Shown one piece after another: positions 5,869 through 61,755 of a stretch of DNA of 64,000 nt; position 1 is the first letter of the stretch, and each line of letters starts with the position of its first letter. A program made the translations under genes and the position numbers. The stretch lies in the sequence record NC_061441.1; one strand, given 5' to 3'. The notes below the pieces were generated by a model. It did not search any database. It was given only the letters and a program-made list of their open reading frames with translations, and was not told where the DNA came from.

Positions 5869-5871
5869 TCA

Positions 5872-6498: not shown

Positions 6499-6507
6499 AA
6501 CCGCTCC

Positions 6508-7146: not shown

Positions 7147-7177
7147 TGTGTTCTCCGTTTACCAGAAGCGGTGGTTA

Positions 7178-7184
7178 AAATTAT
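7178..7184 (-). promoter_or_regulatory. class 2 (virion/late-type) motif ATAATTT
   Basis: 32 nt upstream of the ATG at 7146; overlaps the stop codon of the upstream gene. Confidence 0.4.
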
Positions 7185-7922: not shown

Positions 7923-9599
7923 TTACAGACTCAGACTTGTGGAGGTACTGCCTGACGGGTTGATGTTGAAGCGATAGATCAGACGCTTGGTAGTGCGCGT
8001 CGGGTCTAACACGATATCCAGAATCAAATCGCCGTTAGCGATAGTCTGGTTCGTGTTGTTGTTCTCATCACACACAACCACATAGCCTTGAGAGCCAGAG
8101 CTACCGCCACGAAGACCTCGAGCGAGTTTAATCTCCTCGAGGAACTTCTCAACAATACCCTTCAGGTAACCACGAAGGATGTTGTCGTTCGGGTCGAACA
8201 GGCCGACTTTACAGGTGCGATGGCACACCTCAAGCACGTAGCCAACCATACGCTGAATCTGAATCTGCTGGAAGGCAGAGTTCATGTTATACTGCGTACT
8301 CGCTTCCCAAACTGCGTAGCCACCACCAGAGATATCTGGCAGCTTACGGATGTAGTTGACCTGCTCACGGGTCATAGCATCACGGTCGTCCTGATCATAC
8401 TTCTGCGCGATAGCGAGGAAGTCGAGAGGGCTAGATGCAGTGATACCTGCAGGTGCGAACCACGTACCTCGGTTGTTGTCAGTGTACGCAAACACAGCAC
8501 AGATCTGACCGACACAGGCTGTCCACAGGTAGCGGCCAGTATCTTCATCGAAGATTTTAATGTCAGGCGTATACAGTGCCATGTTGGTGTCGTTCACGTT
8601 CAACGTCTGGCGACGATAGCGAATCGCTTTAGACACAGACTGCTCGGCAGAAGGGATGCCGCAGATAACGAAGCAGTTGATGTGAGCAGCAGCCGCAGCT
8701 TTCATACCACGGTGAATGATGTAGTCCTGAGTAGGACTAATCAGCAGCGTCACACGAACTTCTTCTGGATCACCGAAGTAGTCCTGATACGCTTGCGCCA
8801 GTTGGTCAGAACCAACAGTATCACCGTCTGAGCCACCTTGGAAGAAGATGAAGTCAGTGGTGAAGAAGTCGATATCAGTCGTGAAATATTCGTTACGGAT
8901 GAAACGGAAGTTTGAACTCTCGTTCTCCATAGCGTGATCAACACGATACTGACGGTCGAACTCATCGGCATAGTCAAACAGACTGCACTGATAAGAGTTT
9001 ACTGGCGCACTGCCGTTCTGGTAGTTCTCGAACTCGTCGATGTAGAACAGCTTCGTGTTGTACGATTTGCGGTCGTCGAACGGGTCGAGGCCACGTGGCG
9101 TAGCAGGACGAATCTGCAACGACATTGCGTTGTTCCAGTCACCTGGGTTTTCCAGAATGATGTAACCGATGATGTTTTCATTCAGCGGGTCATCAGGCAG
9201 GAAGCCTAGCTGGTCTGGAGAATCTACGCCAACGATATTACCTTCATCGTCAGTGTACGGAGTCAGGCGAAGTACAGGCTGTACAGCCGACGCGTCATCC
9301 ACAGTCAGAACACCAACAGCGTACTTCGCGTTTTTAGTCACACGAACGTATTTGAGCTGATTGGTCTGTTTGGCTACAGGCAACGCTAAATATAAGCCGA
9401 GGCCATACTTGGGATCTTTTGCACCGAAGATGTTTTTCAAATCATCTTTATTACGCACATCAACACGCTGATTAACAGGACCTCGACGGGCCTGACCAAC
9501 GATGCCTACGACGGACGTAGATAAAGACGTTGCACCAACGGAGAGATCCCGTACACCGGTGTAAACACCAGCAGAGGAATGCGTTGAGTTAACGGGCAT
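7923..9599 (-). CDS. contractile tail sheath protein
   Basis: 558 aa; N-terminal AGVY...S...GIVG...RGPV; C-terminal WFAPAG, GYVVVCDENNNT...I.NG.L..DI...P typical of sheath proteins. Confidence 0.92.
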   Translation of the reverse strand: MPVNSTHSSAGVYTGVRDLSVGATSLSTSVVGIVGQARRGPVNQRVDVRNKDDLKNIFGAKDPKYGLGLYLALPVAKQTNQLKYVRVTKNAKYAVGVLTVDDASAVQPVLRLTPYTDDEGNIVGVDSPDQLGFLPDDPLNENIIGYIILENPGDWNNAMSLQIRPATPRGLDPFDDRKSYNTKLFYIDEFENYQNGSAPVNSYQCSLFDYADEFDRQYRVDHAMENESSNFRFIRNEYFTTDIDFFTTDFIFFQGGSDGDTVGSDQLAQAYQDYFGDPEEVRVTLLISPTQDYIIHRGMKAAAAAHINCFVICGIPSAEQSVSKAIRYRRQTLNVNDTNMALYTPDIKIFDEDTGRYLWTACVGQICAVFAYTDNNRGTWFAPAGITASSPLDFLAIAQKYDQDDRDAMTREQVNYIRKLPDISGGGYAVWEASTQYNMNSAFQQIQIQRMVGYVLEVCHRTCKVGLFDPNDNILRGYLKGIVEKFLEEIKLARGLRGGSSGSQGYVVVCDENNNTNQTIANGDLILDIVLDPTRTTKRLIYRFNINPSGSTSTSLSL

Positions 9600-11858: not shown

Positions 11859-12479
11859 TTAAAGAGATGAGGTCATTAATTCGAGAACGTTTGATACCAC
11901 ATGCGCAGGCCCGATTGAAATACCAGTGTGCGCCTGCAGGTGAATACGTTTAGTGAATAGCTCTAACGGGTCTGGCCCGCCACCAGTCACTACGATGCGA
12001 GGTATCTTCGGGAACATCTCAAGGATATCGCGCAGTCGTTCAATCTTATAACTGGTGCTGTCCATTGTTACGTTTGTCAGCACCAACAACGATGGTCGTT
12101 TCTGTTTGAGTTGTTCGTAGTCGAAACGATCACCATACAACGTTACCCAGCGTGGCTTTAACGCAGTTGCCTCACTATCCTCTACTGCCGCATTGAAGAT
12201 AGACAACGCAGCCATCTTCGCACGATAATCATTTGGGAAACTACTGATCACCGTGATACGCGGGTCAAACGAGAAAGGGTTTTGAATCATCTTCGCAAGG
12301 TGCGTAAGCTGTTTGGTCTTACTTACTACCTTGCCTTTAAAGTAAGGCGACAGTGGCTTATAGTCCTGCGCGGCTTCGGCCACATCAAACTGTTCACGTT
12401 TACCGAATAATAGCTGTGGGTCAACGCCCAGAGTCTGCATCTGCTTTGCTACAGCAGGTTCAAAGTCAAATGTTAGCAC
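11859..12479 (-). CDS. possible degenerate DnaC/IstB-like (helicase loader-like) AAA protein
   Basis: hydrophobic strand LLVLTNV at a Walker B-like position, PRIVVT sensor-like strand, no intact Walker A; GTG start with GAGG RBS. Confidence 0.35.
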   Translation of the reverse strand: MLTFDFEPAVAKQMQTLGVDPQLLFGKREQFDVAEAAQDYKPLSPYFKGKVVSKTKQLTHLAKMIQNPFSFDPRITVISSFPNDYRAKMAALSIFNAAVEDSEATALKPRWVTLYGDRFDYEQLKQKRPSLLVLTNVTMDSTSYKIERLRDILEMFPKIPRIVVTGGGPDPLELFTKRIHLQAHTGISIGPAHVVSNVLELMTSSL

Positions 12480-12499: not shown

Positions 12500-12862
12500 T
12501 TAGGTATTTACAGATTCTGGCGAGCGCTGCCACACAACGAATTTGACGTTCAGAGCCAGCTCCTCCGTTTCAGCAGCAAGCCTAGGCTCGTACTTATGTG
12601 CGTAGCCACGCAAACACTCAGGCCGGACTGCAAGCTGCACATTAATCTTTTGGATTGGGTTCGGCACCTGACTATATGAATGGTCTTCAATGATAACAAG
12701 GTTATCAATACGGAGAACACCAGGAACTTCAAACACTGTGGGCAGTATGCCTGGTTTGAATGCTGAACCCATAACTGTCTCATGGTATTCAACAAGCGCT
12801 TTAACCAACAAGCGGCCGGCAGACTGACTCAGTGTAAGATTGTACTCGGTACGGAATTCCAT
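12500..12862 (-). CDS. hypothetical protein
   Basis: 120 aa ORF with GGAG RBS. Confidence 0.55.
   Translation of the reverse strand: MEFRTEYNLTLSQSAGRLLVKALVEYHETVMGSAFKPGILPTVFEVPGVLRIDNLVIIEDHSYSQVPNPIQKINVQLAVRPECLRGYAHKYEPRLAAETEELALNVKFVVWQRSPESVNT
12505..12513 (-). promoter_or_regulatory. class 1 motif CTGTAAATA
   Basis: 26 nt upstream of start 12479; exact consensus. Confidence 0.55.
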
Positions 12863-18315: not shown

Positions 18316-18577
18316 CTCTATCCTCTAAAACAAATTGTAGTGTGCCCTGTATATTTACAGCTTCAAGGCGCTTACCTGTAGGCATTAACAGGCCATTCAA
18401 CACACCCAGCATATCAGCGCTGTGGCAGTCAGGTGCTATCTGGTGAACGTAGATATCATCAGGCACATCACCTGGGTTAAGCTGCCAAGCAGTACGCAAG
18501 GCAGCACCCATGAATGCCGGACGCTCTACCAGATGCCTGTTCAAAAATGAACATACGTCTTCGGCGCTCAACGTCAT
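18281..18577 (-). CDS. hypothetical protein
   Basis: 98 aa; ATGA overlap with the polymerase stop. Confidence 0.45.
   Translation of the reverse strand: MTLSAEDVCSFLNRHLVERPAFMGAALRTAWQLNPGDVPDDIYVHQIAPDCHSADMLGVLNGLLMPTGKRLEAVNIQGTLQFVLEDRDEDLPTAEEPR
18352..18360 (-). promoter_or_regulatory. class 1 motif CTGTAAATA
   Basis: 37 nt upstream of the clamp start. Confidence 0.55.
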
Positions 18578-21500
18578 TTCTTACCAATCCCCTTAAGTGC
18601 GGAACGGAGCATCGACTTACTGATTTTGATTTTCTTAGGAGCACCATCACCCATCGCAGCCGCTGCTTTCTTAGCTTTCTCGTCTGCTTCGTATTTCTCA
18701 AAGGTTTTGATGTTCTTCGGAAGTTCGGCAAGCCACTCTTTGATGTTCTTCTTGTCCTTGTTGGTGAGTGGATTGACCTTGTCCATCGACCGAATCTTAA
18801 TGTCGTTGGCCCAAAGTTGTTTCTTCATCCAATCGGACATAAGGTGATACTGGTCCTGCATGATGCTGTCAGTCACCTTATCAACATCGAGGTCCTTCTC
18901 ACCAAGCTCATCACGTTTGACGATCAGACCATCACGGATGAGTTTCTTGAGTTGAACGTAAGAGAAGTTCCAACCCTGTACGTCTTTCTCCGATGCACCG
19001 ATTTCAAAGTCAATCTCAGGCACGGATGTGAACGCAAATCCTTCGTGGCGTTTCTGTACGACTTCGACCACTGCGCTGGTCATCGCACGTTCGATCATAT
19101 CGAGCGCAAGGAAGATCCATTTATAATCGCAGTCAACAGTCAAGGAGTCGTGTACCGATACGTTCATATCGAAGTCAGGGTACTCACCATTCGCTTTGAA
19201 GTAGTCATACTTCATACGGTCCAGAATACGAATCGCACTCATCATCAAGTCAGAACCGAAACCCTGTACTGGACTGTTTACCGCACGACGGTCACAAGCG
19301 GCATGAACCATGTTCGCTTCTTTGTGTGACTCAGGCAGCATCAGGCCCCAGAGATGACGACGACGACCGACTGGCGATTCGACATAGAAGTTCTCGTGTG
19401 CAAACTTCTTGATCTTGTCGAACCATTTTAAGCCAACAGGGAAACGAGTAAGGAACTTGCCTTTGATTTCGGCAATCTCTTTCACGTCACGACCAGTAGA
19501 CTTCGCAAGACCTTTATCGCCCTGCTGATAGATCAGACCGAAGATTACGGTCTTAACCGCGTTACGTACGGACTTGGTTACGTCCATTACGTTTGGAATA
19601 CCGAAGAAGTATGCGGCGTTGATTTTGTGAACGTCACCTTCTGCTTCGACGCGGTGCTCGATCCACGGGTCAGGTACTGTACGGAAACGATGACGTAACT
19701 TACGGCCTTGCTCGAATACGTCTGCAACGCCTTGGTCACCTGAGATGATCGACCAGCCCCTTACTTCGTGGGCTGAGTAGTCGACCTTGATTAGTAAACG
19801 GTTCTTACGCGCAATCAAGATACGCTTGATCAGTTTACCCATCTCACTACGGCTCGGTACCTGTTGCAAGTTCGGGTCAGACGCTGAGGTACGACCCGTT
19901 ACAACTCCAAGATAACCATACGTCGGTCGGATTGATCTATCGTGTTTGAAGTCTTCCGATTCGCCCCAGAGTTTAAGCAAGCTGTTAACGTAGGCGTTCT
20001 TGAGCTTGTACGCTTTTCCGAGTTTCGAGTAGAGAGCAACAAGCGGTATATCTGCATACGCCGCTTGGAAGTCCTTGTCCAGCTTGCCCGTCTTCTTACC
20101 GTTCTCACGTAGCTGTTCCCCTTCTTTCAGAGGCTTGAGTTTCATCACGTCGAAGAACAGGATTTGCTTATGCTCTGACTTCGACATATCGAACTTCGTG
20201 ACCTCGACTTTGCCCATAAGACCCATCTTAGGAACATTGTCGTCTTTGCAGATCAGTTTGTTCGCAGCCTTAACTTCAGGGCTGTTCATGAACTCACGCT
20301 CTACGTTTCGAATCTCCTCGTTAATAGGAGAGTTTGGCAGGTTGAGCTTAAACAGGTAGTCGATATCAGCACCAGCGCCTGTCGTCTCCAGAATCGAGAA
20401 CGCATGAATCTGGTCGGAGATTTGCTCACTGACCATAGACTCATATTTGGCATACTTGATATCGTTGGCTCGCTTGAGTTGTTGCTCTGCGATGCGGAAC
20501 GGAACGATAACGTCGAGGCCAGCATATTCCTGAACACTTTCGTCCAAGTCAACGTCGGCAATCGTCGCTCGCATCTCTTTACCGAACGATACTTCATGAT
20601 ACACCTGACAGCCGTACTGCATCGTCAGGTTCGCTAAGTTGTAATAACCAGCGCCCGTAACGTTAAGCAATGACTTGGCGTTCTCATCGTTCGCAAACTC
20701 ACCAGCCTGAATATCCCACACGTTCGCGGCGTAACTACGAATGCCAAAGTTGGAGCGCATTACGTTTAGGTCGAACTTCGCGTTGGTGTAGATTTGATAC
20801 TTGTTCGAGTTCTCCTCAAAGAAGTCTTTGAATAGCTCACGAACCTTGCGCAGTTCTTTCGGACTGAATGGACTGTCGCGGTGATAAATAGGAATGACAT
20901 ATGCCTTCTGACCGTCATCCGATAACTGCACCGTTAAGATTTTATTCTTGATACGGTTCAGGTTCTCGGTTTCGGTATCGACTGCAACCTTCTTGGCGCG
21001 CTTCATACGCTTCAAGATTTTCTCAAGTTGCTTGACCTTCGTTACATACACGAGGTCCCAGTTACGCTTCTTACCACACGTAACCTCTGCGATCTTATAG
21101 CGCATCCCCTTGTTAAGCCACGGCAACATCCAGCGAGCCATGTAGCCGAGCGTGTACGATGAACCAGCAATGTGCATCGGGTTTAGAACGGTGTGATAGC
21201 TAACGTTCGGCAGATGGACGAAGCTGTGTTTCTTCGAACCATGTTTGACCTTCGTCGGTATCTCAACACCGTACCAGTGCTCATAGTGATCTTTCGAGAA
21301 CTGAATCTTCTCGTTGTTCAGCGCTTTGAACGGCGCCTTACCAAACGTCAGCACGTAGTCAGGTTTGTAGTCTACAATGATTTCCCGAATACGGTCAGCG
21401 AACGCGGCATCGGCATCTTCCTTAAACTGTTCACCCTTGTCATAGGTCTTGAACATGTTGTACGAGACAACGAGGAAGTTCCAATCGTCGAGAGTCGTCT

Positions 21501-21741
21501 TGGTCGGAAACGTATCTTCAAGATACTGAATCTGGTTTAGAAACAACTCACCTTCTGTCGAAGTAAAGATTCTGCCGCTACGCAGATCTTCGGTCGGCAT
21601 ATGATCGAGGACGAGAAGTGCTTTGCCACCTTTAGCGCTTTTACTTACGCTTTTCAAAAGTCGAACGCCATCGTAGGTCTGCATGTCTGCAAACTGTTCA
21701 GGCGGATCGAAGTCGAGGGATATAAACTTTGGTTTTTCCAC
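18574..21741 (-). CDS. polA: family A DNA polymerase with N-terminal uracil-DNA-glycosylase-like domain and 3'-5' exonuclease
   Basis: Exo VAVDTET; TGRTSASDPNLQQVP; motif A VDYSAHEVR; motif B RNAVKTVIFGLIY; motif C VSVHDSL; N-terminal KPDYVLTFGKAP similar to family-4 UDG. Confidence 0.95.
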   Translation of the reverse strand: MEKPKFISLDFDPPEQFADMQTYDGVRLLKSVSKSAKGGKALLVLDHMPTEDLRSGRIFTSTEGELFLNQIQYLEDTFPTKTTLDDWNFLVVSYNMFKTYDKGEQFKEDADAAFADRIREIIVDYKPDYVLTFGKAPFKALNNEKIQFSKDHYEHWYGVEIPTKVKHGSKKHSFVHLPNVSYHTVLNPMHIAGSSYTLGYMARWMLPWLNKGMRYKIAEVTCGKKRNWDLVYVTKVKQLEKILKRMKRAKKVAVDTETENLNRIKNKILTVQLSDDGQKAYVIPIYHRDSPFSPKELRKVRELFKDFFEENSNKYQIYTNAKFDLNVMRSNFGIRSYAANVWDIQAGEFANDENAKSLLNVTGAGYYNLANLTMQYGCQVYHEVSFGKEMRATIADVDLDESVQEYAGLDVIVPFRIAEQQLKRANDIKYAKYESMVSEQISDQIHAFSILETTGAGADIDYLFKLNLPNSPINEEIRNVEREFMNSPEVKAANKLICKDDNVPKMGLMGKVEVTKFDMSKSEHKQILFFDVMKLKPLKEGEQLRENGKKTGKLDKDFQAAYADIPLVALYSKLGKAYKLKNAYVNSLLKLWGESEDFKHDRSIRPTYGYLGVVTGRTSASDPNLQQVPSRSEMGKLIKRILIARKNRLLIKVDYSAHEVRGWSIISGDQGVADVFEQGRKLRHRFRTVPDPWIEHRVEAEGDVHKINAAYFFGIPNVMDVTKSVRNAVKTVIFGLIYQQGDKGLAKSTGRDVKEIAEIKGKFLTRFPVGLKWFDKIKKFAHENFYVESPVGRRRHLWGLMLPESHKEANMVHAACDRRAVNSPVQGFGSDLMMSAIRILDRMKYDYFKANGEYPDFDMNVSVHDSLTVDCDYKWIFLALDMIERAMTSAVVEVVQKRHEGFAFTSVPEIDFEIGASEKDVQGWNFSYVQLKKLIRDGLIVKRDELGEKDLDVDKVTDSIMQDQYHLMSDWMKKQLWANDIKIRSMDKVNPLTNKDKKNIKEWLAELPKNIKTFEKYEADEKAKKAAAAMGDGAPKKIKISKSMLRSALKGIGKK

Positions 21742-23629: not shown

Positions 23630-26600
23630 TTACACTGCCTTGTTCTTGGTAGTGGTCAGTTTCAGACGGTCAAGAGCCGTCGTCAACTTCTTGATGTTCG
23701 TGATGTTGTAGCCTGCTTTCACGATCTTGTTGATACGTGCTTTCGCAGTAGCGACATTCTTCACGAAGCCAATCCACATGCCTGGCGACACATCGAAGGT
23801 ACCAAACTTACGAGTGTTCGGAATCTTCGTACCGACGAAACGTTTCATCTGCGGGTTAGTGTTCAGGTCGAACATGATACGCAGACGATCTTCCATTACC
23901 ATCGGGTATGCCTTGACGTGTTTCTTATCAGAGGCTGCCTTGTGACGAATCAGGAAGAACTGTTTCAACTGCTCCTGAGCTTTCAACGCCAGTTTGATGT
24001 TGAAGCCCATACGCGGCGTAGACTCGTCGAAGAAGTCCAGCACGAACTCCAAGCGCTTCTCGGAAGGCTTGTCGAATGCCAGTTTCTTCTTAACCTCAAT
24101 GAAGTCGAGCATCTTCTCGAAGTCTTCATAGTAGGCACAGTCGTAATACACGTAGTCACCGAACTCCACGAAGTCGAATGCCTTGAGGGCTTTCGCATCC
24201 GGGTCGGTAGCGTTCGCGTAAATAGCCACGAAGCCGTTGTACACGGTAGGCGTCAGTTCGAGCGCCATGTCTGCACCAGTCGCTTCTTCGACAGCGGCAG
24301 CAACAGGTTTCTTACGACGAGTCGTGTTGTCCAACACAGGCAGATCAGCAGGCTTACGACGACGAACACGGCCAGCAGCCTCAGCAACACCTTCGTTGAT
24401 TGGCTTACCTTCTGCTTTGTTCGTAGCACGTTGTTTGGCGCGAGCGGTCTTACGCGCTACAGCCACAACCTTCTTCTCTGTCTCAACGGTATCGGCAGTT
24501 TCTGTCTCGTCCTTAATCGTATCTTCAATTTCAATACGATTCGCTTCGGCCGTAGCACGTTTGCGATCTTTCTCGTTCGCCCACGGTTTACGCGCTTCGA
24601 AGAACTTCTTGAGATCAGCCTTGTCGACCTTAGTTGCGATGTGAACTTTGTTGGCAGAAATGCTAACAGTTTCACCTGTACCCGCCAGACGCACACGCAC
24701 CGTGCTGATAGGACTATCTGCACGGAGTTTGCCGTCAACTGTACGCGCAGTCACAGACACGATAACACCATTGCCGTACTCAGTAACGACAGGTGCACGG
24801 TTCAGAGAATCTTTCAGGTTCTCACCGTTCGTGAAGTTGCGGTTACGTGTCCAGTCCAGCAGACGCTCCAGACCCCAGCCGTAGCGATCAGGAATCTTCT
24901 GGTTGGCAACAAACGGAGTCTGCTCCATAACACGGAAGTCGTTCAGCGCCGGCGTAGCGGGTAGTGCCTGCATAGCCGCAACAGTCGTCTTACGCATCTC
25001 ATGGAATTCCTGAGACTCGATTTCGTTCAGGTCGCGCTTGGCAAAGAAGTACTGGGCGAAGTCTTCCATCGTGTTGTTGTCGATGAGCAGTTTCGCGCTC
25101 ATCTTGATCGGGTCCAGTTTGTACTGATCGAGTGCTTCGTAACGCTGGTTGCCCTTCTCATCAAAGCGCGTTTTCTCCAGTGTCTTCCACATCAGACGAG
25201 CGACCTTACCAACTTCAAGGGTCTTGTTCGTCATTACCCAGTCAATGAACACAACCTCACGAGCCATGTCGCCGGGCTTACCGTTCTCGTCCAACTTCGC
25301 AGCAGCAACGTCAGGACGGAAGATACGCGCAGTAGACTGATCGTAAGTACCCGGTGACCACGGAGTATCGCAGCGGATGATACGGCTACCCATCTGCATG
25401 TTGTGGCCTTCGGAGATTGCCTGTTCGTTCGCAATCAGAATCTGGACGTTGTTGTCCGTTTTGAATGCGTCGAGGTTAGCGTCTTTGTTCTGGCCCAGCT
25501 TACCAACTTCACCGTGATACACTACAGCAACTTTCTTGTAGTTCTCAGGCAGAGCGTTGTAGATAGCGTTAGCCGCACGAACGTAGCGCGTGAAGACAAT
25601 CAGCTTGCCCTGCACCTCTGGTTTCCAGTAGTCCGGATCGTCCGGAGGCGGAACCATTGAAGGCGGTAAGGCTTGACGTTTGTACTCTTCGGACTGCTTA
25701 CGTGCCAGATACTTCTGACCGTTGTAGACAGCAATGTCCAGTTCACGAGGAGTAACGCCTGGCTTCCAGTCGAAGATCTGCTGTTCACCAACCATCGGGT
25801 CACGTTCAGGCTGCACTTCGAAGTGCTTCTTGATACGGTCGATAATGGTCAGCACTTTCGCAGATACGAAGTTGGTAACACCAGCGGCTTCAAACGTCAG
25901 ACGTGCAACGTCATCACCCATCGGGTCAGTCAACATCATTTCCATACGCTGGAAGTACATGTTCAGGTCGGCGTTACCTGCAAGCAGTGCGCCCAGGTCA
26001 TCACCTTCCTCGATATCGTCTTCGTCAATGTCGGAAGCGTTATCATCAGCGCCACCAGCATCATCGTCTTCGTCATCGTTACCAGCAGAGGCTTTGCGTT
26101 TCGCAGCGTTGGCCGCGTCTTGCAATTTCTCCAGCACCTGTTCGTACATCGCGTTATACACCTCTTGGTGCAGCGCAGAGTTAGGAACAGACGGGTCATC
26201 GATCTCAACCTGAATGAAGGTGTCAATCGGGTTAGGCAGCATGAACGCCCAGTGCTTACGCTTGAACGAGATGAATGCAGTGTGGTTCGCCATACGAGAG
26301 TGAGCACGACGAATCATTTCGATATCGTCTTTCGCACCATCATACGCAACATCCAGTGAGTCACCGAACATTGCAGGCGTCATCAGCGCGGCCTGACCAA
26401 CGATATCACGCACACGGTCCGTTACCAGCGTACCAGTAGCGATACGAGCATAGCGAACGGACGGAGCAGTGAATACCGCTTTGGTGTTGAAGTGAACCTG
26501 CGAGCCAGCCTGACCACCAGAGAAGTTCTTCACTTTATGCGACTCATCGAGCAGCACATAGCTGAAACGGAAGCGGTTAACGAACTCTACAGCACCACGC

Positions 26601-29479
26601 ACACGAACACGCACACCGCCGATATCAACGTTGAACGTACCAGTCTGGAGGAAGCTCAGGCCAACGATATAGATCGTGTTGCGCGGAGCCTGCTGGATAA
26701 CGTCATACATGCGGTCTTCGCCCCACGTATTAACAGTGTCAGCAGTGATAGGCACTGCGTTCCAACCATCAACAACTTTGTGGAGGTCATCACACCAGTT
26801 CGCTACGAGGTTAGACGGACAGATGATCAGAGGACGAATCGTTTCTTCGCCAAGGTCATCCAGCTCTTTGATTAGAGCAGCAACGTCGGTCAGACCGATG
26901 ATTGTCTTACCGCCACCCGGTGCGATAAAGATTGTTGCGAAGCGTGGACGACGACGCAGAGTTTTGTGCGCTTCAACCTGATGCGGCAGTAACGCTGCAC
27001 CTGCTTTCAGACCTGGGATACGGATATCTTCAATCGTGATACCGCTATCCGGTTTCAGCTTCTCAATCTCCACTTCGGCCTGTTCGAAGTATTCGAGTGA
27101 TTTAGGAATCACGTCGCTGTACATCGTGGCGAACGGCAGAATGATTTGTTGCAGACGGTCAGAGCCTGGGGCCTGTTCGTCTTCAATCAGAGAGCTGAAC
27201 AACTTCTTACGATCACTACGAGCCAGAGCCTGAGTCATCTCACGATACAGCGCGCCACCGAAGTAGTTATTCAGTCGCGCCATGTCAGACAGCTTGGAGC
27301 TTTCACCCATCACGAAGTAGTGAGTGTGGTTCGGCAGAGATTCGGTTGCAGCCTGAATGCTACCCATCTCATTGAGAGAGGTCATAATCAGGTTAGACCC
27401 ACGCAGACCAGCAGCATCGTTCAGCACACGGAGCATCACGCGCATCATCGTCATTGCAGGACGTTCGTTAGCGAGGTCTGGAATTGAGAAGTCGTTCTCA
27501 ATCAGGTTCTGATACAGGTTCTGGTCCATCGGGCTTTCGGCCAATGAAGCATTCTCTGCGTCCATACCGATAGCAACACGCGCCTGCTGCACCAGAGTTT
27601 TCAGATCAGGAACTTGTTTGTTCTTGAGCATGAACTCATAGGTCTGACAGGTAGATGCGATAATCTGCACCAGCTCGTGGAGGTTAGAACCTTCGGTGCT
27701 GTTGTACTTGATGGTGCTGTCCGAAACAGCTTCCACCAGACGGCCAGCGCCAGATTCTGCTTTCGCCGCTTCGATCATCATGTCGTTAGACACTCGATAT
27801 GCAGCCATACCACCAGAAGACTGATTGTGGTGGATGTTACCGATTACGTTAGATGCAGAACGGAAGTTAGGTGCTTCACCAGGCTCTGCGAAGTCGTAGC
27901 CAAGTGAGTCGGCAACGTCCAGAGAGTTCGGCGCTTTCATGCCTACGGTACGTGTCTCTTTAACATCGAGACCGCCACCATTAGACGTGTTCACGATCAG
28001 CGCGAAGTCAGGGTCAATGCCGATGCACACGTTACTGAAACGAGAGAGCGACTTGGCCTTGGTCTGCACTTCACGGTCGAAGTCCAGATTACCGTTCTGA
28101 ATTGCGAACATGTTGGTACGCAGGGTATCGTGCTCGGTGGACAGAGGCACACCCTTTTCGAACAGGTCTTCGAGTACGCTGTTGAGAGAAGACTCGTAGG
28201 TCTTAACCATCTCAATGTCGATATCTTCACGACGAGGAAGCACTGCGAGAGTACCATTCGGCATGATCGTCAGACCGTTATCGTCTGCAACCACATCGTT
28301 TACCACATAGCCAAACTTCTCACGGAGTTTCTTCAACTCAGGCAGAGTGGTGGCCGAGGTAACGTAGCGTGGGATACGCGCAGCACGAGTGATACCAGTA
28401 CGAGTAGAGCCAGCAACACGGAAGTAGTAGCTCGCCCAACCCTGGAACCAACGATACAGACACATGGTCTGCGTGTCAGCGCCCTGAGAGATGTACTCGA
28501 CCATTTCTTTTTCGAAGTTAACGATCAGGCCGCCTTCAACGCGAACGTCAGTAGCGAGAGCGACAGGGTTAAAATCGACAGGCGTATCGTGGCTGATTTT
28601 CATCGCTTGAATCTTGCGATCAATCATCGCCTTGCCTGGGATAGGACGAATACCGATCGTCATGAAATCGCCCAGCGCTTCGGCAGCACCTTTGTCCAGA
28701 TTACGGAACAGGTCGATATCCATGTTGTGCATCAGCGGGTGAATGGAGCGCAGAGCCGCGTTATACACAGTCCAGTCTTTATCGAGAGGAATGCGGACCA
28801 TCTTCGTTTCGAATGCGTTGGAGTTGGTGCGTTCAACGCCGAAGATATCTTTGTACAGAGTCTTCGCCACACGAATCGCAGCCTGTGCAATATCAGAACT
28901 GTAGGTCTGAATGTTGGCACGTTCGAAGTTGGCGTCATTGTCCACACGAGGACGGTCGCTACCCTGATTGTTCAGAACGTTGAAGTTACCGTTCGAGGCC
29001 AGAGGACTTGTCGGGCATGGCGTACCAGACATGATAATGTCACGACCACCTGGGAAGCGCGTACTGTTTTCAATCACGGCACCAGATGCTGCGGACAGGT
29101 GTTCAGCCAGAGAGGTCTTAATCTCACGACTCAACTTGTCGCCGTTCAGTGACATATTGATACGCATGATGGACAGATCGATGTTGTTCTTAACACGCTT
29201 AACAAAATCGTCTGGCGCTACTTCCAGCATGTCTTCGAACTCTGCACCGTTGGTAACGATGTAGTTGATCAAATCGAATGCGGCGTAGATGCGAGCAACG
29301 GTAGATGCGGTGAACACTGCAAGGGTTTCGTAGTTACGACGAGACTTCCCTGTAGCGTACATTTTCGACATTTTACCATCGAACTCGGGCGGCAACGTCT
29401 TCACAGCCAGAGCCTGATTAAACGTATCGGCGATCTGCTGGGTTGCGGTTGCTGAGGTACTGATCATTTGATTCATCAT
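23630..29479 (-). CDS. giant SNF2-family helicase/translocase (1949 aa)
   Basis: LLPHQ (Q motif), APGGGKT, LLDESHKVK, IATGT, GHNMQ, PWSP...DQSTARIFR; N-terminal ISTSA tag. Confidence 0.85.
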   Translation of the reverse strand: MMNQMISTSATATQQIADTFNQALAVKTLPPEFDGKMSKMYATGKSRRNYETLAVFTASTVARIYAAFDLINYIVTNGAEFEDMLEVAPDDFVKRVKNNIDLSIMRINMSLNGDKLSREIKTSLAEHLSAASGAVIENSTRFPGGRDIIMSGTPCPTSPLASNGNFNVLNNQGSDRPRVDNDANFERANIQTYSSDIAQAAIRVAKTLYKDIFGVERTNSNAFETKMVRIPLDKDWTVYNAALRSIHPLMHNMDIDLFRNLDKGAAEALGDFMTIGIRPIPGKAMIDRKIQAMKISHDTPVDFNPVALATDVRVEGGLIVNFEKEMVEYISQGADTQTMCLYRWFQGWASYYFRVAGSTRTGITRAARIPRYVTSATTLPELKKLREKFGYVVNDVVADDNGLTIMPNGTLAVLPRREDIDIEMVKTYESSLNSVLEDLFEKGVPLSTEHDTLRTNMFAIQNGNLDFDREVQTKAKSLSRFSNVCIGIDPDFALIVNTSNGGGLDVKETRTVGMKAPNSLDVADSLGYDFAEPGEAPNFRSASNVIGNIHHNQSSGGMAAYRVSNDMMIEAAKAESGAGRLVEAVSDSTIKYNSTEGSNLHELVQIIASTCQTYEFMLKNKQVPDLKTLVQQARVAIGMDAENASLAESPMDQNLYQNLIENDFSIPDLANERPAMTMMRVMLRVLNDAAGLRGSNLIMTSLNEMGSIQAATESLPNHTHYFVMGESSKLSDMARLNNYFGGALYREMTQALARSDRKKLFSSLIEDEQAPGSDRLQQIILPFATMYSDVIPKSLEYFEQAEVEIEKLKPDSGITIEDIRIPGLKAGAALLPHQVEAHKTLRRRPRFATIFIAPGGGKTIIGLTDVAALIKELDDLGEETIRPLIICPSNLVANWCDDLHKVVDGWNAVPITADTVNTWGEDRMYDVIQQAPRNTIYIVGLSFLQTGTFNVDIGGVRVRVRGAVEFVNRFRFSYVLLDESHKVKNFSGGQAGSQVHFNTKAVFTAPSVRYARIATGTLVTDRVRDIVGQAALMTPAMFGDSLDVAYDGAKDDIEMIRRAHSRMANHTAFISFKRKHWAFMLPNPIDTFIQVEIDDPSVPNSALHQEVYNAMYEQVLEKLQDAANAAKRKASAGNDDEDDDAGGADDNASDIDEDDIEEGDDLGALLAGNADLNMYFQRMEMMLTDPMGDDVARLTFEAAGVTNFVSAKVLTIIDRIKKHFEVQPERDPMVGEQQIFDWKPGVTPRELDIAVYNGQKYLARKQSEEYKRQALPPSMVPPPDDPDYWKPEVQGKLIVFTRYVRAANAIYNALPENYKKVAVVYHGEVGKLGQNKDANLDAFKTDNNVQILIANEQAISEGHNMQMGSRIIRCDTPWSPGTYDQSTARIFRPDVAAAKLDENGKPGDMAREVVFIDWVMTNKTLEVGKVARLMWKTLEKTRFDEKGNQRYEALDQYKLDPIKMSAKLLIDNNTMEDFAQYFFAKRDLNEIESQEFHEMRKTTVAAMQALPATPALNDFRVMEQTPFVANQKIPDRYGWGLERLLDWTRNRNFTNGENLKDSLNRAPVVTEYGNGVIVSVTARTVDGKLRADSPISTVRVRLAGTGETVSISANKVHIATKVDKADLKKFFEARKPWANEKDRKRATAEANRIEIEDTIKDETETADTVETEKKVVAVARKTARAKQRATNKAEGKPINEGVAEAAGRVRRRKPADLPVLDNTTRRKKPVAAAVEEATGADMALELTPTVYNGFVAIYANATDPDAKALKAFDFVEFGDYVYYDCAYYEDFEKMLDFIEVKKKLAFDKPSEKRLEFVLDFFDESTPRMGFNIKLALKAQEQLKQFFLIRHKAASDKKHVKAYPMVMEDRLRIMFDLNTNPQMKRFVGTKIPNTRKFGTFDVSPGMWIGFVKNVATAKARINKIVKAGYNITNIKKLTTALDRLKLTTTKNKAV

Positions 29480-55069: not shown

Positions 55070-55435
55070 CAAAAGAATAAAGTAAGACAAATCTTAAACT
55101 CCAATAGGGACTCGCTGGAATTCCTATTGGAGTTCACCCTCAACCGATGACGGTCGGCGGAAGGTGTTCTCCCCGTGCTTTTCGATTGCACCAGCACGGT
55201 AGCGCTTGCGGTCTTACGCTCTTGTCATGCAGCGGGCCGGCAGGGATGGTAGCATTTCCCGCCGCAAAGAGCAGCCGCTTTCGGCCATTAGCGATAACGC
55301 GGTGTTACGCTTAACGGCCCGACTCTGTGGCCGAGTCTGTACAAAAAAGAGTTCGGCCTATTCCCCAATTCGGCAAAAAGAAATAAGCCGAACTAAACAG
55401 TCAACGCACACTCCATATGCGCTGTTTTGTACTGT
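55070..55435 (-). ncRNA. candidate structured non-coding RNA (~370 nt), family unknown
   Basis: no credible ORF; at least 7 consecutive helices whose imperfect pairs are mostly G-U on the minus strand; GNRA-type segments; class 2 motif immediately upstream; ends in a 12 bp perfect stem plus U-rich tail. Confidence 0.6.
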
Positions 55436-55438
55436 AAC

Positions 55439-55445
55439 AAATTAG
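55439..55445 (-). promoter_or_regulatory. class 2 motif CTAATTT upstream of the candidate ncRNA
   Basis: exact motif, with no protein gene downstream for over 400 nt. Confidence 0.5.
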
Positions 55446-55472: not shown

Positions 55473-56060
55473 TTAGTTCAACATCGGAACAAGATTTTGC
55501 AAGAAATGTTTGCGGTCAAACGAACTGATTCGGTGCGGATGATCGACGTGCATGTTCCATCCTTTGTTGAACAGCAGCACGTTCTTCGGCAGGACAACGT
55601 TAAGGCCAACGCGAGTGAACGAATCACGAACGGCAGTCACTGGATTGTCGTCAACCAGAATCCAAGTACCTTCACCGTACTTCTCGTTCAGGTAAGCAAT
55701 CTTATCAGGATGCTGGCGTGAGTCCAGGCAGTCGATGTGGTCAAACAATGACAGGTGCTTCTCCAACACCTTGCGTGTGTAGCGTTCACCTTTGGCGTGA
55801 TAGCCACGATGCGTACAAATGCCAACACTGAAACCGTCGCGCACCAGCATTGCAACCGTTTGGATGAAGTAGTCACGCATGTTAGCTTCGAGCATGAAGC
55901 GACCGTCAGCCAGCATTTCCACGAAAGGTTCGTGACCATTCTCTGGCGTAATGTACGTGTCGGTACCTGGGTAGATCCCAAAGTTCATCAGATAGCACAG
56001 CATGAAGTTATGCGTATCGAATGCCGTGTCGTCCATGTCGAAGAAAATATATTTAATCAT
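55473..56060 (-). CDS. HAD-superfamily phosphatase / 5'-nucleotidase-like
   Basis: YIFFDMDDT (DxD motif I), ICTHR (motif II), K, ILVDD (motif IV). Confidence 0.8.
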   Translation of the reverse strand: MIKYIFFDMDDTAFDTHNFMLCYLMNFGIYPGTDTYITPENGHEPFVEMLADGRFMLEANMRDYFIQTVAMLVRDGFSVGICTHRGYHAKGERYTRKVLEKHLSLFDHIDCLDSRQHPDKIAYLNEKYGEGTWILVDDNPVTAVRDSFTRVGLNVVLPKNVLLFNKGWNMHVDHPHRISSFDRKHFLQNLVPMLN

Positions 56061-56398
56061 TAATGCCTCGTGCTGTTGCACAGAAAAGGTGTATCGTTGA
56101 TGAAGCCTAGATTCAACTGACAGGCAAGGTGAGTCAGTCGCATCTCATCGGCGTTGGTTACGATCATAACGTTAGCGTATGGGTCGAGTCGGAAGTTTGG
56201 AACTTCGATCAACTCAACGTTGAATGGACCAGACTCGTTCTCATTAATGAAGTACGCGCCAAGCATCCACGTTGTACCGTTATCATCTGGAAGTAGGTGA
56301 CCGATGATGCAATCCTCGTCCTGCATAACAATATGCAGTGGTCTATCGAAGTCCATATCTTCTGCACCAAATTCAAAATGGAAATCATCATCGCTCAT
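56060..56398 (-). CDS. hypothetical acidic protein
   Basis: 112 aa; TAATG coupling. Confidence 0.5.
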   Translation of the reverse strand: MSDDDFHFEFGAEDMDFDRPLHIVMQDEDCIIGHLLPDDNGTTWMLGAYFINENESGPFNVELIEVPNFRLDPYANVMIVTNADEMRLTHLACQLNLGFINDTPFLCNSTRH

Positions 56399-57955: not shown

Positions 57956-58486
57956 TTATAGTTGATCAACGATGTTCATCGTGTGAACTTCCGCTGTGTA
58001 GCCCTGACGGAAGATGCGACCTTCTGCGCGGCCTGTTGCCTGCTCTGCGGAAGGGACGCCCCAGCTTGTTGCGGGCTCAACCGAGATGAGTGCCTGCTCA
58101 TCCCACATGTCACCGTCTTCAAGGTAGTCGGCAATCATCTGGAGAGCAGCAGGACGATCGAGGCCCAAGTGCGCAAGCTCGGCGATAATGAGTTTCGGCG
58201 CAGTGGCGTCTTTCATTTCGTCGAGTTCGTATTGCAGATCGGAAAGCGAGTTAACCTGACGGCAGTCAGCGCTAGTCAGTCCGGCATACTCGTCTTGTCC
58301 AAAATAAGCAATTGCAAAGTCAGGAACATCAAGTTGACTGGAAAAGAAATGAGGAGCGTCCACCAAAACAGAAGGCGCGGCGCTCATCTGGAGAAAACTC
58401 ATGTATGGGCGTTGCATCTCATGAGCTTCTACCGAACAGGACTTCCCAGCAAGATCTTTCATTATGCTGTGTGCGAGATTATTCAT
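57956..58486 (-). CDS. hypothetical protein
   Basis: 176 aa; GAGG RBS. Confidence 0.5.
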   Translation of the reverse strand: MNNLAHSIMKDLAGKSCSVEAHEMQRPYMSFLQMSAAPSVLVDAPHFFSSQLDVPDFAIAYFGQDEYAGLTSADCRQVNSLSDLQYELDEMKDATAPKLIIAELAHLGLDRPAALQMIADYLEDGDMWDEQALISVEPATSWGVPSAEQATGRAEGRIFRQGYTAEVHTMNIVDQL

Positions 58487-58493
58487 TGTAACC

Positions 58494-58709
58494 TCATTTC
58501 TCAGGAGTAGGAGTAAAAGGGCTGTGGGTGTACGGAGTTAACTTATCCACGTACAGGAAACGAGATGAAGCACTACTGTAGCCAGAGCGTGGTACCGATT
58601 GCTTTTTCTTGGCTTCGGCCTCACGTCTATCCAGCTCGTCAAAGATACCTACGCGACGGGCGTACTTAAACTTCGGGTGTACGGAGATATGTTTGACGAT
58701 AGCTGTCAT
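58494..58709 (-). CDS. small basic hypothetical protein
   Basis: 71 aa; start overlaps the stop of the TnpB-like gene. Confidence 0.45.
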   Translation of the reverse strand: MTAIVKHISVHPKFKYARRVGIFDELDRREAEAKKKQSVPRSGYSSASSRFLYVDKLTPYTHSPFTPTPEK

Positions 58710-59737
58710 TTTTTATATTGTCCTGTAACAATGTAGACAAGGGATTTTTTGGAGACACGCGCATTGACGATCAAGTATTTGAACTCTTTCGTCGGCTCAA
58801 GTTCTCCAGCCGTCACACGAACTATTGGAATGTTCTGAATCTCACCGAACGTAAGTGTCGTCCCCATCTCATTGATTGAGCAGGAAGATGAAAGCGAAAC
58901 ACTATTCAACGACTTCTTTGAAATCATCGAAGGATGTTTACCGTGCTGGCGTTTGGCATCCAACCATTTTTGCCAGTCGGCTGTCGCGTGGTGCATTGAA
59001 CGTTTAATCAAAGAGCGTGGAACATCGCCTTCATACTGCTTGCGAAACTCCGTAATGACTTTCGAGTCAGGAGCACCTGCGGTTACGCGTCGTTTGTCCT
59101 TAAGCGCCCCCTTCAAATGCTCTGACCAATGGTCGTAGGCATCGCCACGGATCTGGATGTAATCATCCATCATCTGAGCTTGCGCCAAACTACATTCAAT
59201 TTCGAATGTCACCAACTTACCGCGATAGCTTGGCGTATCAGCCGAGTGCCGTTCAGCGAGTTTTGCCGCGCGTGTTTCAGCGATAAGTTTCTCTTTGATA
59301 CAAGCTGCCCATGAGTACACAAACGTCAATCGCAGATCAGGACCTTGCGCCAGCAAGTCAGGACAGAACTGCATTAACAGTGGGATAGCATAACCGAGAT
59401 AGCAACGACGTTCGATGAACGCGGACTTTAGGTCATCAGGATTGATTTTACCTTCACCGAGATTCGCAAACAGTTTTCGAGACTGCTTATACGACTCGGA
59501 GATATGGGAGCCATCATACACAACATCATCAATGGTAATTCCCGACTCAATGACTTTGGTGTACGCTTCTTCGATTGTAACATCAGGCCACGTCCTGTAC
59601 CCAACATCGGCCAGCAGAAAATTCTTATGGCAGAAGAACTCATACATGTGCAAAAAGTCCGCGACAGGCAGACTTTCTGGATATACGAATTGTTTGGGCG
59701 CTTTCTTTGGCGTGATACTAGCTTTCTTCTTAATCAT
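58706..59737 (-). CDS. TnpB-derived protein: unknown N-terminal domain plus TnpB WED/REC-like region, lacking RuvC
   Basis: aa ~171-343 align by eye with the IS200/IS605 TnpB N-terminal half (RGK...LAQ...YDHW...ALK; DVP..LIKRSM...ADWQKWL; GKHPSM.SKK; TLTFGEI; KYLIV...YIV); ORF ends where the RuvC-I strand would begin. Confidence 0.6.
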   Translation of the reverse strand: MIKKKASITPKKAPKQFVYPESLPVADFLHMYEFFCHKNFLLADVGYRTWPDVTIEEAYTKVIESGITIDDVVYDGSHISESYKQSRKLFANLGEGKINPDDLKSAFIERRCYLGYAIPLLMQFCPDLLAQGPDLRLTFVYSWAACIKEKLIAETRAAKLAERHSADTPSYRGKLVTFEIECSLAQAQMMDDYIQIRGDAYDHWSEHLKGALKDKRRVTAGAPDSKVITEFRKQYEGDVPRSLIKRSMHHATADWQKWLDAKRQHGKHPSMISKKSLNSVSLSSSCSINEMGTTLTFGEIQNIPIVRVTAGELEPTKEFKYLIVNARVSKKSLVYIVTGQYKK

Positions 59738-59744
59738 CGCTTTC

Positions 59745-61424
59745 TCACTGGAGTTTGCTGGCTATTTTCAGATACTCGCTATTTACAGTTTCCACATCCG
59801 TGTAACCCCTGCTGGCTGTAACGTCACGGCGTAGATCACCCATGCGGTAACCGTTTTCCCATAGACGCATAAACAACAGGCTGTTAAGAGTCGGCTGCAT
59901 GAACGGTTTTTCTTTCAATGCAACATCACCCTTATATTCGGTCAAGAGTATCGCGCCATCAAATTCGGCACTGCACCATTCGGCTTCCGCTAAAATTTTA
60001 AGCAGGTTATGATTCTCCATGCCTTGGATTAAATGACTAAGCACCGTGTACTGTTCCCGCTTGAAGCGATGCGCAGGTACTTGGTGTGAGCATCCTGAAT
60101 CGTTTTTGAAATAGTACGCACCGTTACGAGAATAAGAGGAATCTCGTATGCGCTCGCACAATTCACTGACGACTTCGGACGCAGGCTTAAACATCGCCTT
60201 CCACTTATCCCAAATAAATCCAACATGCTGGTGCATCTCTTTTTCATTCAGTCGAAGTTTCTTAACCGCATTGACGATCTTCGTGTCATTCAACAACTGA
60301 CGATAAATATCAGTAGCCATAGGCTTTTGTTGTTCGTTGTCCGTGCGTGTCTCGAATGATTGCTTGAAATATTTCTGGTTACTCCAGCCGCTATAAATTC
60401 CCCCGTAGTTGAGAGTCTTGGCTGTGCTGCGCGTAATGTTCAACTGCCGTGCAACCCTATCGTGATTGAGTTGCTCAAGTTCAGGACAATCTAGTCCATA
60501 CTGTGCCATCAGGTCTAAAAGCAAAACCATCTGAGCATTAGGCATGTCGAAGTTACGGCCATACGAATGATCGAAACATAACAGCTTCACCAATTTAGGT
60601 AGAGCGGCCGTAGTTCCAAACAATCGTGACCCAACGTGGTTCATTGTGTATTCGTCGTAAAACTCCACCAGCCTGTCGTTTGGATTATCGTTAACAAGCC
60701 TAAACCCGAAGCGACAAATCTTTTTCAGGAACGAATTGAGCCTGAGGTGCAGTTTCTTTCGGCGATTCGTTTTTGTATTGTGCATTATATCCAAGAATCG
60801 ATCGAGGTACAACCGATACGGACGTTGATTGGCCTGAGCCTTGTTTATCAGTTCGATAACCTCACCGCAATATGCTCTGCGATTTTCGAAGTTATGGGGA
60901 CGAATAAACGAGCGTGGCTTTATTTCGGAGCAGAACGAAGACGTTACCAAGTCGGCTTCGTTTTTATAGAGGGCCCTTCTACGCACAGGCTTCATGAGAT
61001 TGTACAGAGGCTCATCAAGCAAGGTCAGTTCGCAGAATATGTCCGTAAACACCTTATTAAGCGTGTACTTACGGGCGATCCCCTTAATGTAATCGTAACG
61101 AGTGTGGTCAACCTTTCGACCTAACCACGTAGCTACGGAGTATTCCTTGTGATACACCATCGCGTACCGCATCTTTTCGTGCTGACGCAGATAGGTGTGG
61201 GTCACTACCGTTTCGTTATAGACGTTTCTGCGTTCCATAACGCCCGATTTATCGAGAAGGTGCATGAAAAACCATGCAAGGCTCTCGTAAAACTTATCCG
61301 ATTTTGCTTTAGGTGGCTTAGGGCAAGAATAAATCGTGTCCCAGAAGAACTTGTGGGCCGATTTATTAACCGTGAACGCCCATCCTGGCATCACGGCCTT
61401 CTTGCGGTACACGGGCTTTGCCAT
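59745..61424 (-). CDS. divergent family A (TV-Pol-like) polymerase/primase, no exonuclease or helicase domain
   Basis: GSRLFG...LPK; motif A NFDMPNAQ; motif B RSTAKTLNYGGIY; LIQGMEN; motif C AEFDGA; start MAKPV has a GAGG RBS. Confidence 0.65.
   Translation of the reverse strand: MAKPVYRKKAVMPGWAFTVNKSAHKFFWDTIYSCPKPPKAKSDKFYESLAWFFMHLLDKSGVMERRNVYNETVVTHTYLRQHEKMRYAMVYHKEYSVATWLGRKVDHTRYDYIKGIARKYTLNKVFTDIFCELTLLDEPLYNLMKPVRRRALYKNEADLVTSSFCSEIKPRSFIRPHNFENRRAYCGEVIELINKAQANQRPYRLYLDRFLDIMHNTKTNRRKKLHLRLNSFLKKICRFGFRLVNDNPNDRLVEFYDEYTMNHVGSRLFGTTAALPKLVKLLCFDHSYGRNFDMPNAQMVLLLDLMAQYGLDCPELEQLNHDRVARQLNITRSTAKTLNYGGIYSGWSNQKYFKQSFETRTDNEQQKPMATDIYRQLLNDTKIVNAVKKLRLNEKEMHQHVGFIWDKWKAMFKPASEVVSELCERIRDSSYSRNGAYYFKNDSGCSHQVPAHRFKREQYTVLSHLIQGMENHNLLKILAEAEWCSAEFDGAILLTEYKGDVALKEKPFMQPTLNSLLFMRLWENGYRMGDLRRDVTASRGYTDVETVNSEYLKIASKLQ
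59780..59788 (-). promoter_or_regulatory. class 1 motif CTGTAAATA
   Basis: 43 nt upstream of 59737, inside the 3' end of the TV-Pol-like gene. Confidence 0.55.
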
Positions 61425-61455
61425 TTGGACCTCAAAACATGCGTTTCGTGGGTGA

Positions 61456-61464
61456 TCTTTACAG
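61456..61464 (-). promoter_or_regulatory. class 1 variant CTGTAAAGA
   Basis: 32 nt upstream of ATG 61424. Confidence 0.45.
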
Positions 61465-61755
61465 AATCCGTCTTTTTCTCGTGGTATGGAACTCAAATTG
61501 CATCATCAGATTAGGTAGATAGGAGATATCAGCATGTTCATGCAGCATGAGCGCACTATAGTCACAAGAAATCAGCAGTCTGAAACCAGAACCCTGCTCC
61601 CAGGAAGCATATCCCTTTGAAATAACCATGCCGAAACAGGCGAAAACGTACAACCTTGAATAGACTGGTTATTTGGTGTCAATGCAGAGGATTCTTAATC
61701 CCAGCATGTGGACGTGCAAAGGGAGTGCTCCCGGGATGAATCTACAGGAAAGTGG

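Follow-up and report, generated by a model that had tools for sequence, protein, structure and literature searches.

The window analysed here is a stretch of 64,000 nucleotides from record NC_061441.1, in which position 1 corresponds to base 124001 of the record. It comes from Erwinia phage pEa_SNUABM_16, an Alexandravirus and jumbo phage of the fire-blight bacterium, with a genome of ~266 kb; over the part tested, it is 100% identical to records of pEa_SNUABM_16/18. At positions 59745..61424 on the minus strand lies gp222, which is annotated as 'hypothetical protein', belongs to the PHROGs family phrog_30690 (function unknown) and is predicted to encode a 559-aa minimal polymerase of the family-A fold. 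It is followed by gp221 (58706..59737, minus strand), the gene for a 343-aa partner protein, which starts 7 nt past the polymerase stop, and preceded by a 331-nt spacer (61425..61755, minus strand). Together, spacer, polymerase and partner form an exchangeable cassette (58710..61755, minus strand). The start codon of gp222 is an ATG with GAGG 8 nt upstream; a longer, TTG-started frame is also present, and a conserved promoter-type motif falls within that extension. gp222 is intact and selectively maintained: comparison with pEa_SNUABM_35 gives dN 0.040, dS 1.73 and dN/dS 0.023, a ratio that marks it as a working gene.

Searches with the gp222 protein returned zero matches in Pfam, NCBIfam, PADLOC and the PDB sequences (phmmer), and the Pfam profile DNA_pol_A (PF00476) did not match it at E <= 1. 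A six-frame search of the phage with PF00476 found gp177 only, and gp222 is therefore regarded as a superfamily relative rather than a member of the curated family. A profile search against the PDB gave a sole match, to motif B of Pol gamma (E 0.27), and an hhalign comparison with the PolA of this phage covered motif B and nothing else. Word-based homologue searches, with either a single sequence or an alignment as the query, reached close relatives only.

The fold was identified through structure. An AlphaFold model, for which 15 homologues were used, reaches a pLDDT of 79 overall; within its last 390 residues, most ten-residue blocks score 83-94. Compared using VIA, which is independent of Foldseek, the model matched Klenow best, with Z 14.0 and an rmsd of 3.8 Å over 271 residues (model residues 177-508). 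Apicoplast Pol, Pol theta, Aquifex Pol I, Pol nu and T7 DNAP follow at Z 11.9-13.0, with DpoZ also among this next-ranked group (Z 10.7-13.0), then Pol gamma (9.1), the T7 and mitochondrial RNA polymerases (8.4) and N4 RNAP II (6.1). Rows 1-19 and 21 are all family-A DNA polymerases or T7, N4 or mitochondrial RNA polymerases, while unrelated folds all score below Z 6. Foldseek agrees on the polymerase fold, with probabilities of 0.95-1.0. These matches delimit a thumb-palm-fingers core at residues ~177-510 (59895..60896, minus strand; Klenow Z 14.0, T7 RNAP Z 8.4) and leave ~170 aa as the N-terminal rest. On this model, gp222 is an exonuclease-less nucleotidyl transferase of the Pol I/T7 superfamily.

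The N-terminal domain (residues 1-~175; 60900..61424, minus strand) is common to the whole family and contains an invariant histidine, H55. Folded alone, it is modelled as alpha/beta with a pLDDT of 76.5, and its structure search gave no significant match (best VIA Z 3.3, best Foldseek E 0.44). Several winged-helix DNA binders occur among the weak structural rows, which is a hint only.

An earlier sequence-only reading of this DNA had described a second, stand-alone family-A-fold polymerase, and structural comparison with Pol A and T7 RNAP recovers that fold, with the canonical PolA and its exonuclease encoded by a separate gene, gp177. Its statement that the protein carries neither an exonuclease nor a helicase was borne out by the Pfam and structure searches, which found no such domain in gp222. 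The N-terminal region of no known kind, which it had put at ~270 aa, shrinks to ~170 aa, since the polymerase-like thumb starts near residue 170-177.

The catalytic centre was examined in an alignment of 18 homologues from phages, metagenomes and bacteria. R267, D293, K336, G468, E470, D489 and G490 are invariant wherever covered (one row lacks motif C), while Q298 and H464 each vary in two rows. All of the motifs quoted from the letters alone are present, both catalytic aspartates (D293 and D489) are conserved in the homologues, and all lie on the minus strand within a modelled polymerase fold. The GSRLF beta-hairpin (60618..60632), with R267, is the counterpart of Pol I TGRLS and its template-contacting Arg, and forms part of GSRLFG...LPK at residues 265-277. 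Motif A, NFDMPNAQ (60531..60554; NFDMPNA is residues 291-297), holds D293 and the near-invariant Q298. Motif B, the O-helix RSTAKTLNYGGIY (60393..60431; RSTAKTLNYG is residues 332-341), carries R332, the invariant K336 and the aromatic residues Y340 and Y344. HLIQGME (60015..60035; LIQGMEN is residues 465-471), with H464, Q467, G468 and E470, corresponds to the QGxAAD segment of Pol I. Finally, motif C (59955..59966, residues 487-490) reads EFDG in gp222 and EHDG in most relatives, with the catalytic D489 followed by Gly where Pol I has a second carboxylate. The spacing from D293 to D489 is 196 aa, compared with 177 aa in Klenow.

The residues expected to line the nucleotide pocket bear on the choice of substrate. 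Q298 lies at D+5 after the motif-A Asp, the presumed steric-gate position in an ungapped register taken from sequence only. Family-A DNA polymerases carry a steric-gate Glu there, and the relevant Klenow residues are E710, F762 and Y766; T7 RNAP has G542 at the steric gate, together with Met635 and Y639, which reads the ribose 2'-OH. In the gp222 family, O-helix position 340 is Y, F or H and position 344 is Y or F, with Phe at 344 in many members. With aromatics at both O-helix positions and a bulky Gln at D+5, the pocket looks DNA-polymerase-like. The motif-B Arg (R332) is more variable: it is kept in type I and AD1-type phages, is Lys in SNUABM_20/30, and is Glu, Asp or Val in several bacterial-island members, while the Lys of motif B is invariant.

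gp222 is encoded alongside a full set of replication genes. gp177 (18577-21741) is a canonical PolA with 3'-5' exonuclease, gp001 is a DnaB-type helicase, and gp231, although annotated as hypothetical, is a DnaG-type primase with zinc ribbon and Toprim. The phage also encodes a clamp loader, SSB, UvsX, ligase and topoisomerase II, as well as a sigma factor (gp245). The same replisome and sigma factors have been described for PaBG and its relatives, in a report whose polymerase section is silent on a second polymerase (PMC7412058). Because the phage encodes a full replisome, including gp177, gp001 and gp231, gp222 is neither the bulk replicase nor the only primase.

Three upstream motifs recur genome-wide: TGTGATATAAT, aaTCTGTAAATA and gCTAATTT. 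The sigma-70-like TGTGATATAAT motif belongs to the early region, aaTCTGTAAATA is found 40-48 nt upstream of PolA, the clamp loader, the DnaG primase, a methylase and others, and gCTAATTT precedes structural genes. TTCTGTAAAG lies ~40 nt upstream of the gp222 ATG, with the promoter-class motif TCTGTAAA at 61458..61465 (minus strand). The window contains 8 copies of this octamer, all of them on the coding strand, compared with 2.3 expected, and none of 100 shuffles reaches 8. A TGTAAA core lies 32-50 nt upstream of the polymerase in all eight cassette alleles inspected. Given the genes that the TCTGTAAA motif precedes, gp222 appears to be wired into the replication-phase programme. The spacer also carries a putative sigma-70-like site, TTCAGA-18-TATAGT (61555..61584, minus strand), with a conserved TGTGACTATAGT that resembles the early TGTGATATAAT promoters of the phage. 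The phage-specific motifs are short and -10-like and a phage sigma factor is encoded, which points to the host RNA polymerase rather than a T7-like enzyme as their reader.

Comparison with related phages shows that the cassette is exchanged as a block. Relative to AD1, SNUABM_20, SNUABM_30 and SNUABM_1, flanking proteins are 80-92% identical, compared with 21-24% for the polymerase, and gp221 is replaced in these phages by an unrelated protein of 155-175 aa. Nucleotide homology with type II phages ends at 61756, the gp223 stop codon, and returns at 58709-58716, the gp220 start; these sharp breakpoints define the exchanged unit as spacer, polymerase and partner (58710-61755). SNUABM_7 shows the converse, as its flanks are less like pEa_SNUABM_16 than those of AD1, yet its polymerase is 69% identical. 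Thus, the history of the cassette is incongruent with that of the genome backbone. The sequence-only reading had also described the DNA as richer in A/T than its neighbours, and this holds: G+C is 46.1% for the gp222 ORF and 46.2% for the cassette, against 49.6 +/- 1.5% for the genome, and no 3-kb stretch of the genome is lower.

The polymerase and its partner travel together. In every allele, their genes overlap or are separated by 10 nt at most; four or more polymerase/partner pairs have diverged deeply, and the link between the two is supported by their co-replacement. The partners diverge even faster than the polymerase, and hhalign among the type I partner, the type II partners and a 380-aa protein from bacterial islands (see below) found no relation. 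Neither the 343-aa partner nor the 155-175-aa, helical-looking ones show detected OB-fold/SSB similarity. The cassette is always at one locus, and it was present and intact in every locus examined (34 related phage records matched); no integrase, transposase or terminal repeats were found in or beside it. Two further candidates were set aside. The 331-nt spacer is unlikely to act as an RNA or an origin, as it has no Rfam match, a fold z-score of -1.7 and no iterons. A structured RNA at 55070-55445 was considered as a third part of the cassette and rejected: it still shows 79-83% identity in type II phages, whose polymerase allele differs and which lack gp221, and so belongs to the backbone.

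The family is rare. An exhaustive phmmer scan of 1.8 billion representatives found 6 clusters, and tblastn found relatives of gp222 in 34 phage records, all of them Erwinia or Dickeya phages; those examined more closely belong to Alexandravirus or Yoloswagvirus. A degenerate-pattern scan of 185,579 species genomes added Klebsiella, Pectobacterium, Budvicia (two tandem polymerase paralogues), Kluyvera (a frameshifted copy), Gilliamella and a Desulfobacula MAG, and the cluster members add Serratia and Dickeya, with names that are all 'hypothetical'. In a tree of the family, phage alleles fall into four deep groups, of which the type I group (pEa_SNUABM_16, Yoloswag) sits on a long stem, while the bacterial-island copies, except for two long-branch rows, form a separate well-supported clade.

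Bacterial copies lie in islands of Klebsiella, Pectobacterium, Dickeya, Budvicia and Gilliamella. Enterobacterial loci share a conserved order, namely HTH, DUF2787, RadC, tyrosine integrase, AlpA, a 380-aa protein and the polymerase. The cargo beyond the polymerase varies and includes, for example, type I restriction-modification genes and an AAA_15 ATPase. The 380-aa protein has a sub-threshold Rep_trans match (E 0.017) and the UniRef name 'Replication protein', and matched nothing in the PDB or NCBIfam; it is tentatively taken to be a replication protein. The polymerase would occupy the slot that replication genes take in integrative elements and phage satellites.

The reading that best accommodates these observations, and to which we give somewhat better than even chances, is that gp222 is a template-dependent DNA polymerase also capable of initiating chains, that is, a primase-polymerase, which works with its downstream partner in an accessory role. 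gp222 would copy a template with dNTPs, could prime, and would act together with the gp221 protein encoded immediately downstream. Expressed from the promoter class of the replisome genes, it would serve as an accessory replication-phase enzyme on a horizontally exchanged 3-kb cassette, leaving bulk replication to the PolA+exo gp177, the DnaB gp001, the DnaG-type gp231 and the clamp loader. We infer the use of dNTPs, priming, joint action with the partner and the biological role from the pocket residues, the gene arrangement, the island context, the promoter class and the parallel with CcPol-MP (see below). A specialised primase had already been suggested from the sequence; this remains plausible as a special function, but as a primase for bulk synthesis gp222 is not needed, given gp231 and DnaB. 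Several observations also count against the primase-polymerase reading. As the phage has a DnaG-type primase, priming by gp222 is not an obvious need, and the motif-B R332 is not conserved in bacterial members. The second motif-C carboxylate is replaced by Gly, at a position that is non-acidic in RNA polymerases too. No helicase is linked, and the partners show no detected similarity to OB-fold SSBs.

An alternative that we consider unlikely, but that deserves attention, is that gp222 and its partner form a conflict module, for anti-defence or for exclusion of phages or satellites, whose nucleic-acid product would block or decoy a host or rival system. This was proposed to explain the fast turnover of alleles, which fits a conflict-related function as well as a replication function. 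Several features would suit such a module: the lowest-G+C cassette is swapped between genomes that are 80-92% identical elsewhere, its allele pairs number at least four and are deeply divergent, and the partners diverge faster still. A possible early promoter in the spacer, and relatives in islands with restriction- or defence-like cargo in the host genera Dickeya and Pectobacterium, would fit as well. However, in the islands the polymerase is one of the constant genes, beside AlpA and the 380-aa protein, rather than part of the variable cargo, its phage counterpart shares the promoter class of replication genes, and PADLOC matched none of the polymerase, the partner, gp223 and gp224. We know of no PolA-based defence or anti-defence system.

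A quite improbable alternative is that gp222 is a minimal single-subunit RNA polymerase like N4 RNAP II, which would transcribe one promoter class with accessory factors. The sequence-only reading had offered this for one of the promoter classes, and the structural matches keep it in view, with T7 RNAP at Z 8.4, N4 RNAP II at Z 6.1 and mitochondrial RNA polymerases among them. Motif C, (H/F)DG without a second carboxylate, and a near-invariant His (varying in 2 of 18 rows) one turn ahead of the QG segment point the same way. The rest of the genome shows no recognisable T7-like RNAP, although the control for that search, in which Pfam RNA_pol (PF00940) did not match the phage, was itself silent, and the early-like promoter in the spacer could supply gp222 before middle transcription. 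Nevertheless, DNA polymerases (Z 11-14) score clearly above RNA polymerases (Z 4.0-8.4), the fingers contain no insertion the size of a specificity loop, and the nucleotide-contacting residues are DNA-polymerase-like, with the Tyr needed by RNA polymerases replaced by Phe in many members. The promoter classes are short and -10-like and the sigma factor gp245 is encoded (PMC7412058 for the phage group), phages sharing the same promoter motifs carry alleles of only 21-24% identity, and the bacterial relatives occupy the replication slot of islands. Together, these points weaken the claim.

It is very unlikely that the cassette is the replication module of an invading mobile element or satellite, kept for the element's own benefit while doing nothing for the phage. 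The low G+C and sharp borders of the cassette, the relatives in islands and the earlier example of TV-Pol elements within phage Ma-LMM01 (PMC2579912) would suit this reading, but no integrase, transposase or terminal repeats accompany the cassette, which sits intact at a single fixed locus in every case examined, under the phage's own middle-type promoter in all alleles and with a dN/dS of 0.023.

The co-swapped partner invites a more speculative reading, which we regard as something of a long shot. The pair may be a new targeted DNA-synthesis machine, in which the partner picks the nucleic-acid site for priming or copying, and the fast turnover of allele pairs would mirror shifts in target specificity. 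Such changes in specificity would then concern either the choice of origin or conflict with hosts, satellites and rival phages.

In summary, a fold and a testable activity can now be given to a family whose members are named 'hypothetical' in all phage and bacterial records examined. The cassette illustrates that a polymerase gene can act as part of an exchangeable two-gene unit within otherwise conserved jumbo-phage genomes, and through the gp222 family these phages are connected with integrative islands of their host genera. If gp222 primes, Gram-negative elements would have a second primase lineage outside DnaG and AEP, and gp222 would be a compact polymerase to consider for biotechnology.

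Among known systems, Pol I, T7 DNAP, Pol theta and Pol nu are the best structural matches (Z 11.9-14.0) and share motifs A, B and C in the same order and with similar spacing. gp222 differs from Pol I in having no 3'-5' exonuclease or remnant of one, in falling below Pfam DNA_pol_A detection, and in carrying Gln rather than Glu at the presumed steric gate and Gly rather than Glu after the motif-C Asp. T7-like RNA polymerases share the superfamily fold and a motif C with (H/F)D followed by a small residue, and the size of gp222 resembles that of N4 RNAP II. However, they match at Z 4.0-8.4 only, gp222 contains no promoter-recognition elements, and, by alignment register, it has an aromatic where T7 RNAP has Met635 and a bulky residue in place of Gly542.

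The TV-Pols are a further point of comparison, and the sequence-only reading had assigned gp222 to them. These polymerases combine a minimal family-A core with an extra N-terminal domain, have no nuclease, are predicted to act as primase-polymerases, and occur in viruses and integrase-bearing mobile elements, with phage Ma-LMM01 reported to carry TV-Pol elements (PMC2579912). Their core comprises a thumb, an Arg hairpin, a two-Asp palm and fingers with a basic-xxx-Lys helix; typical traits are a highly conserved RxxxK in the first fingers helix and either fusion or linkage to a D5-like helicase or the all-helical TV-PolN combined with integrase, resolvase or transposase neighbours (PMC2579912). 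Part of the assignment stands: gp222 likewise has a nuclease-less minimal core with an extra N-terminal domain, and its bacterial relatives, unlike the phage copy, adjoin a tyrosine integrase and AlpA. For membership itself, neither a profile nor a structural link was found. In BFVD, the Zamilon replication protein (E 9e-4) ranks among ordinary Pol I proteins (E 3e-4 to 1e-3), no D5 helicase is fused or adjacent to gp222, the N-terminal domain is modelled as alpha/beta rather than all-helical, and the motif-B Arg is not kept family-wide. A search of Ma-LMM01 with the gp222-family profile gave no match, although an empty answer from such a search proves nothing. As TV-Pol membership is not shown by profile or structure, the gp222 family is taken as a distinct clade of minimal A-family polymerases.

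Among analogues studied by experiment, CcPol-MP of SCCmec is the nearest, and to our knowledge it is the only biochemically characterised case of priming among the minimal A-family polymerases of mobile elements. The polymerase elongates primers by itself, but its dNTP-based priming requires binding to the protein encoded by the following gene (PMC7581432, PMC10061031). gp222 shows no detectable sequence relation to CcPol-MP, its family's partners carry no detected OB-fold/SSB signature, and it is encoded by a jumbo phage with a full replisome, with no helicase gene following it. The likeness to CcPol-MP/PolA-SSB is one of architecture and operon logic only: in both, a truncated A-family polymerase is followed directly downstream by the gene for a small partner. 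With the gp222 family, the short list of minimal A-family polymerases from mobile elements gains a distinct clade.

gp177 (1055 aa; window 18577-21741, minus strand), recorded as 'hypothetical protein', is the real family-A replicase of the phage, with a 3'-5' exonuclease. Despite its 'DNA polymerase' label, gp166 (206 aa; 11859-12479, minus strand) has no Pfam match. gp231, annotated as hypothetical and located about 4 kb past the window end (191990-193048 of NC_061441.1), is the DnaG-type primase of the phage, based on its CHC2 zinc ribbon and Toprim domain (phrog_47). The sole match of gp023, a 123-aa protein annotated as 'DNA primase', is a sub-threshold one to Toprim_2. gp180 (1948 aa; 23630-29476, minus strand), carries SNF2-related and Helicase_C domains that are confined to its middle part, leaving more than 800 N-terminal residues without assignment.

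Across the whole phage genome, three motif classes were identified upstream of genes. Sites of the sigma-70-like TGTGATATAAT lie in the early region (205-265 kb). Replication genes are preceded by aaTCTGTAAATA and structural genes by gCTAATTT, which also stands before gp224, directly upstream of the polymerase cassette. Within the window, upstream motif sites occur on the minus strand at 12507, 21782, 31153, 38511, 41016, 54706, 55047 and 61458.

Comparison with AD1-type phages, which carry a divergent polymerase allele, suggests that the variable zone reaches past the cassette into the region of the small downstream genes gp216, gp219 and gp220 (56060-56398, 57956-58486 and 58494-58709, all minus strand), since these reach only 47-67% conservation, far below the 85-92% of the peptidase and gp217 nearby. 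The AD1 polymerase homologue itself (Dickeya phage AD1, locus L014, 5905-7521) is encoded by an unbroken reading frame of 538 aa in which every motif is present, but the annotated gene covers only its C-terminal 350 aa (6469-7521). BFVD entries from Dickeya phages JA13 and JA11 are also short, at 284 and 405 aa, respectively, and may be similar mis-calls or fragments.

The bacterial island of Budvicia aquatica (L027) encodes two highly divergent tandem paralogues of the polymerase (5769-7166 and 7998-9449), the first of which lacks several otherwise conserved residues (the Q298, H464 and Q467 equivalents). The Kluyvera island (L028; 7911-9427 and 4282-5173), where the polymerase gene is present as two overlapping frames and the integrase is broken into three pieces, looks like a degenerating copy of the element.
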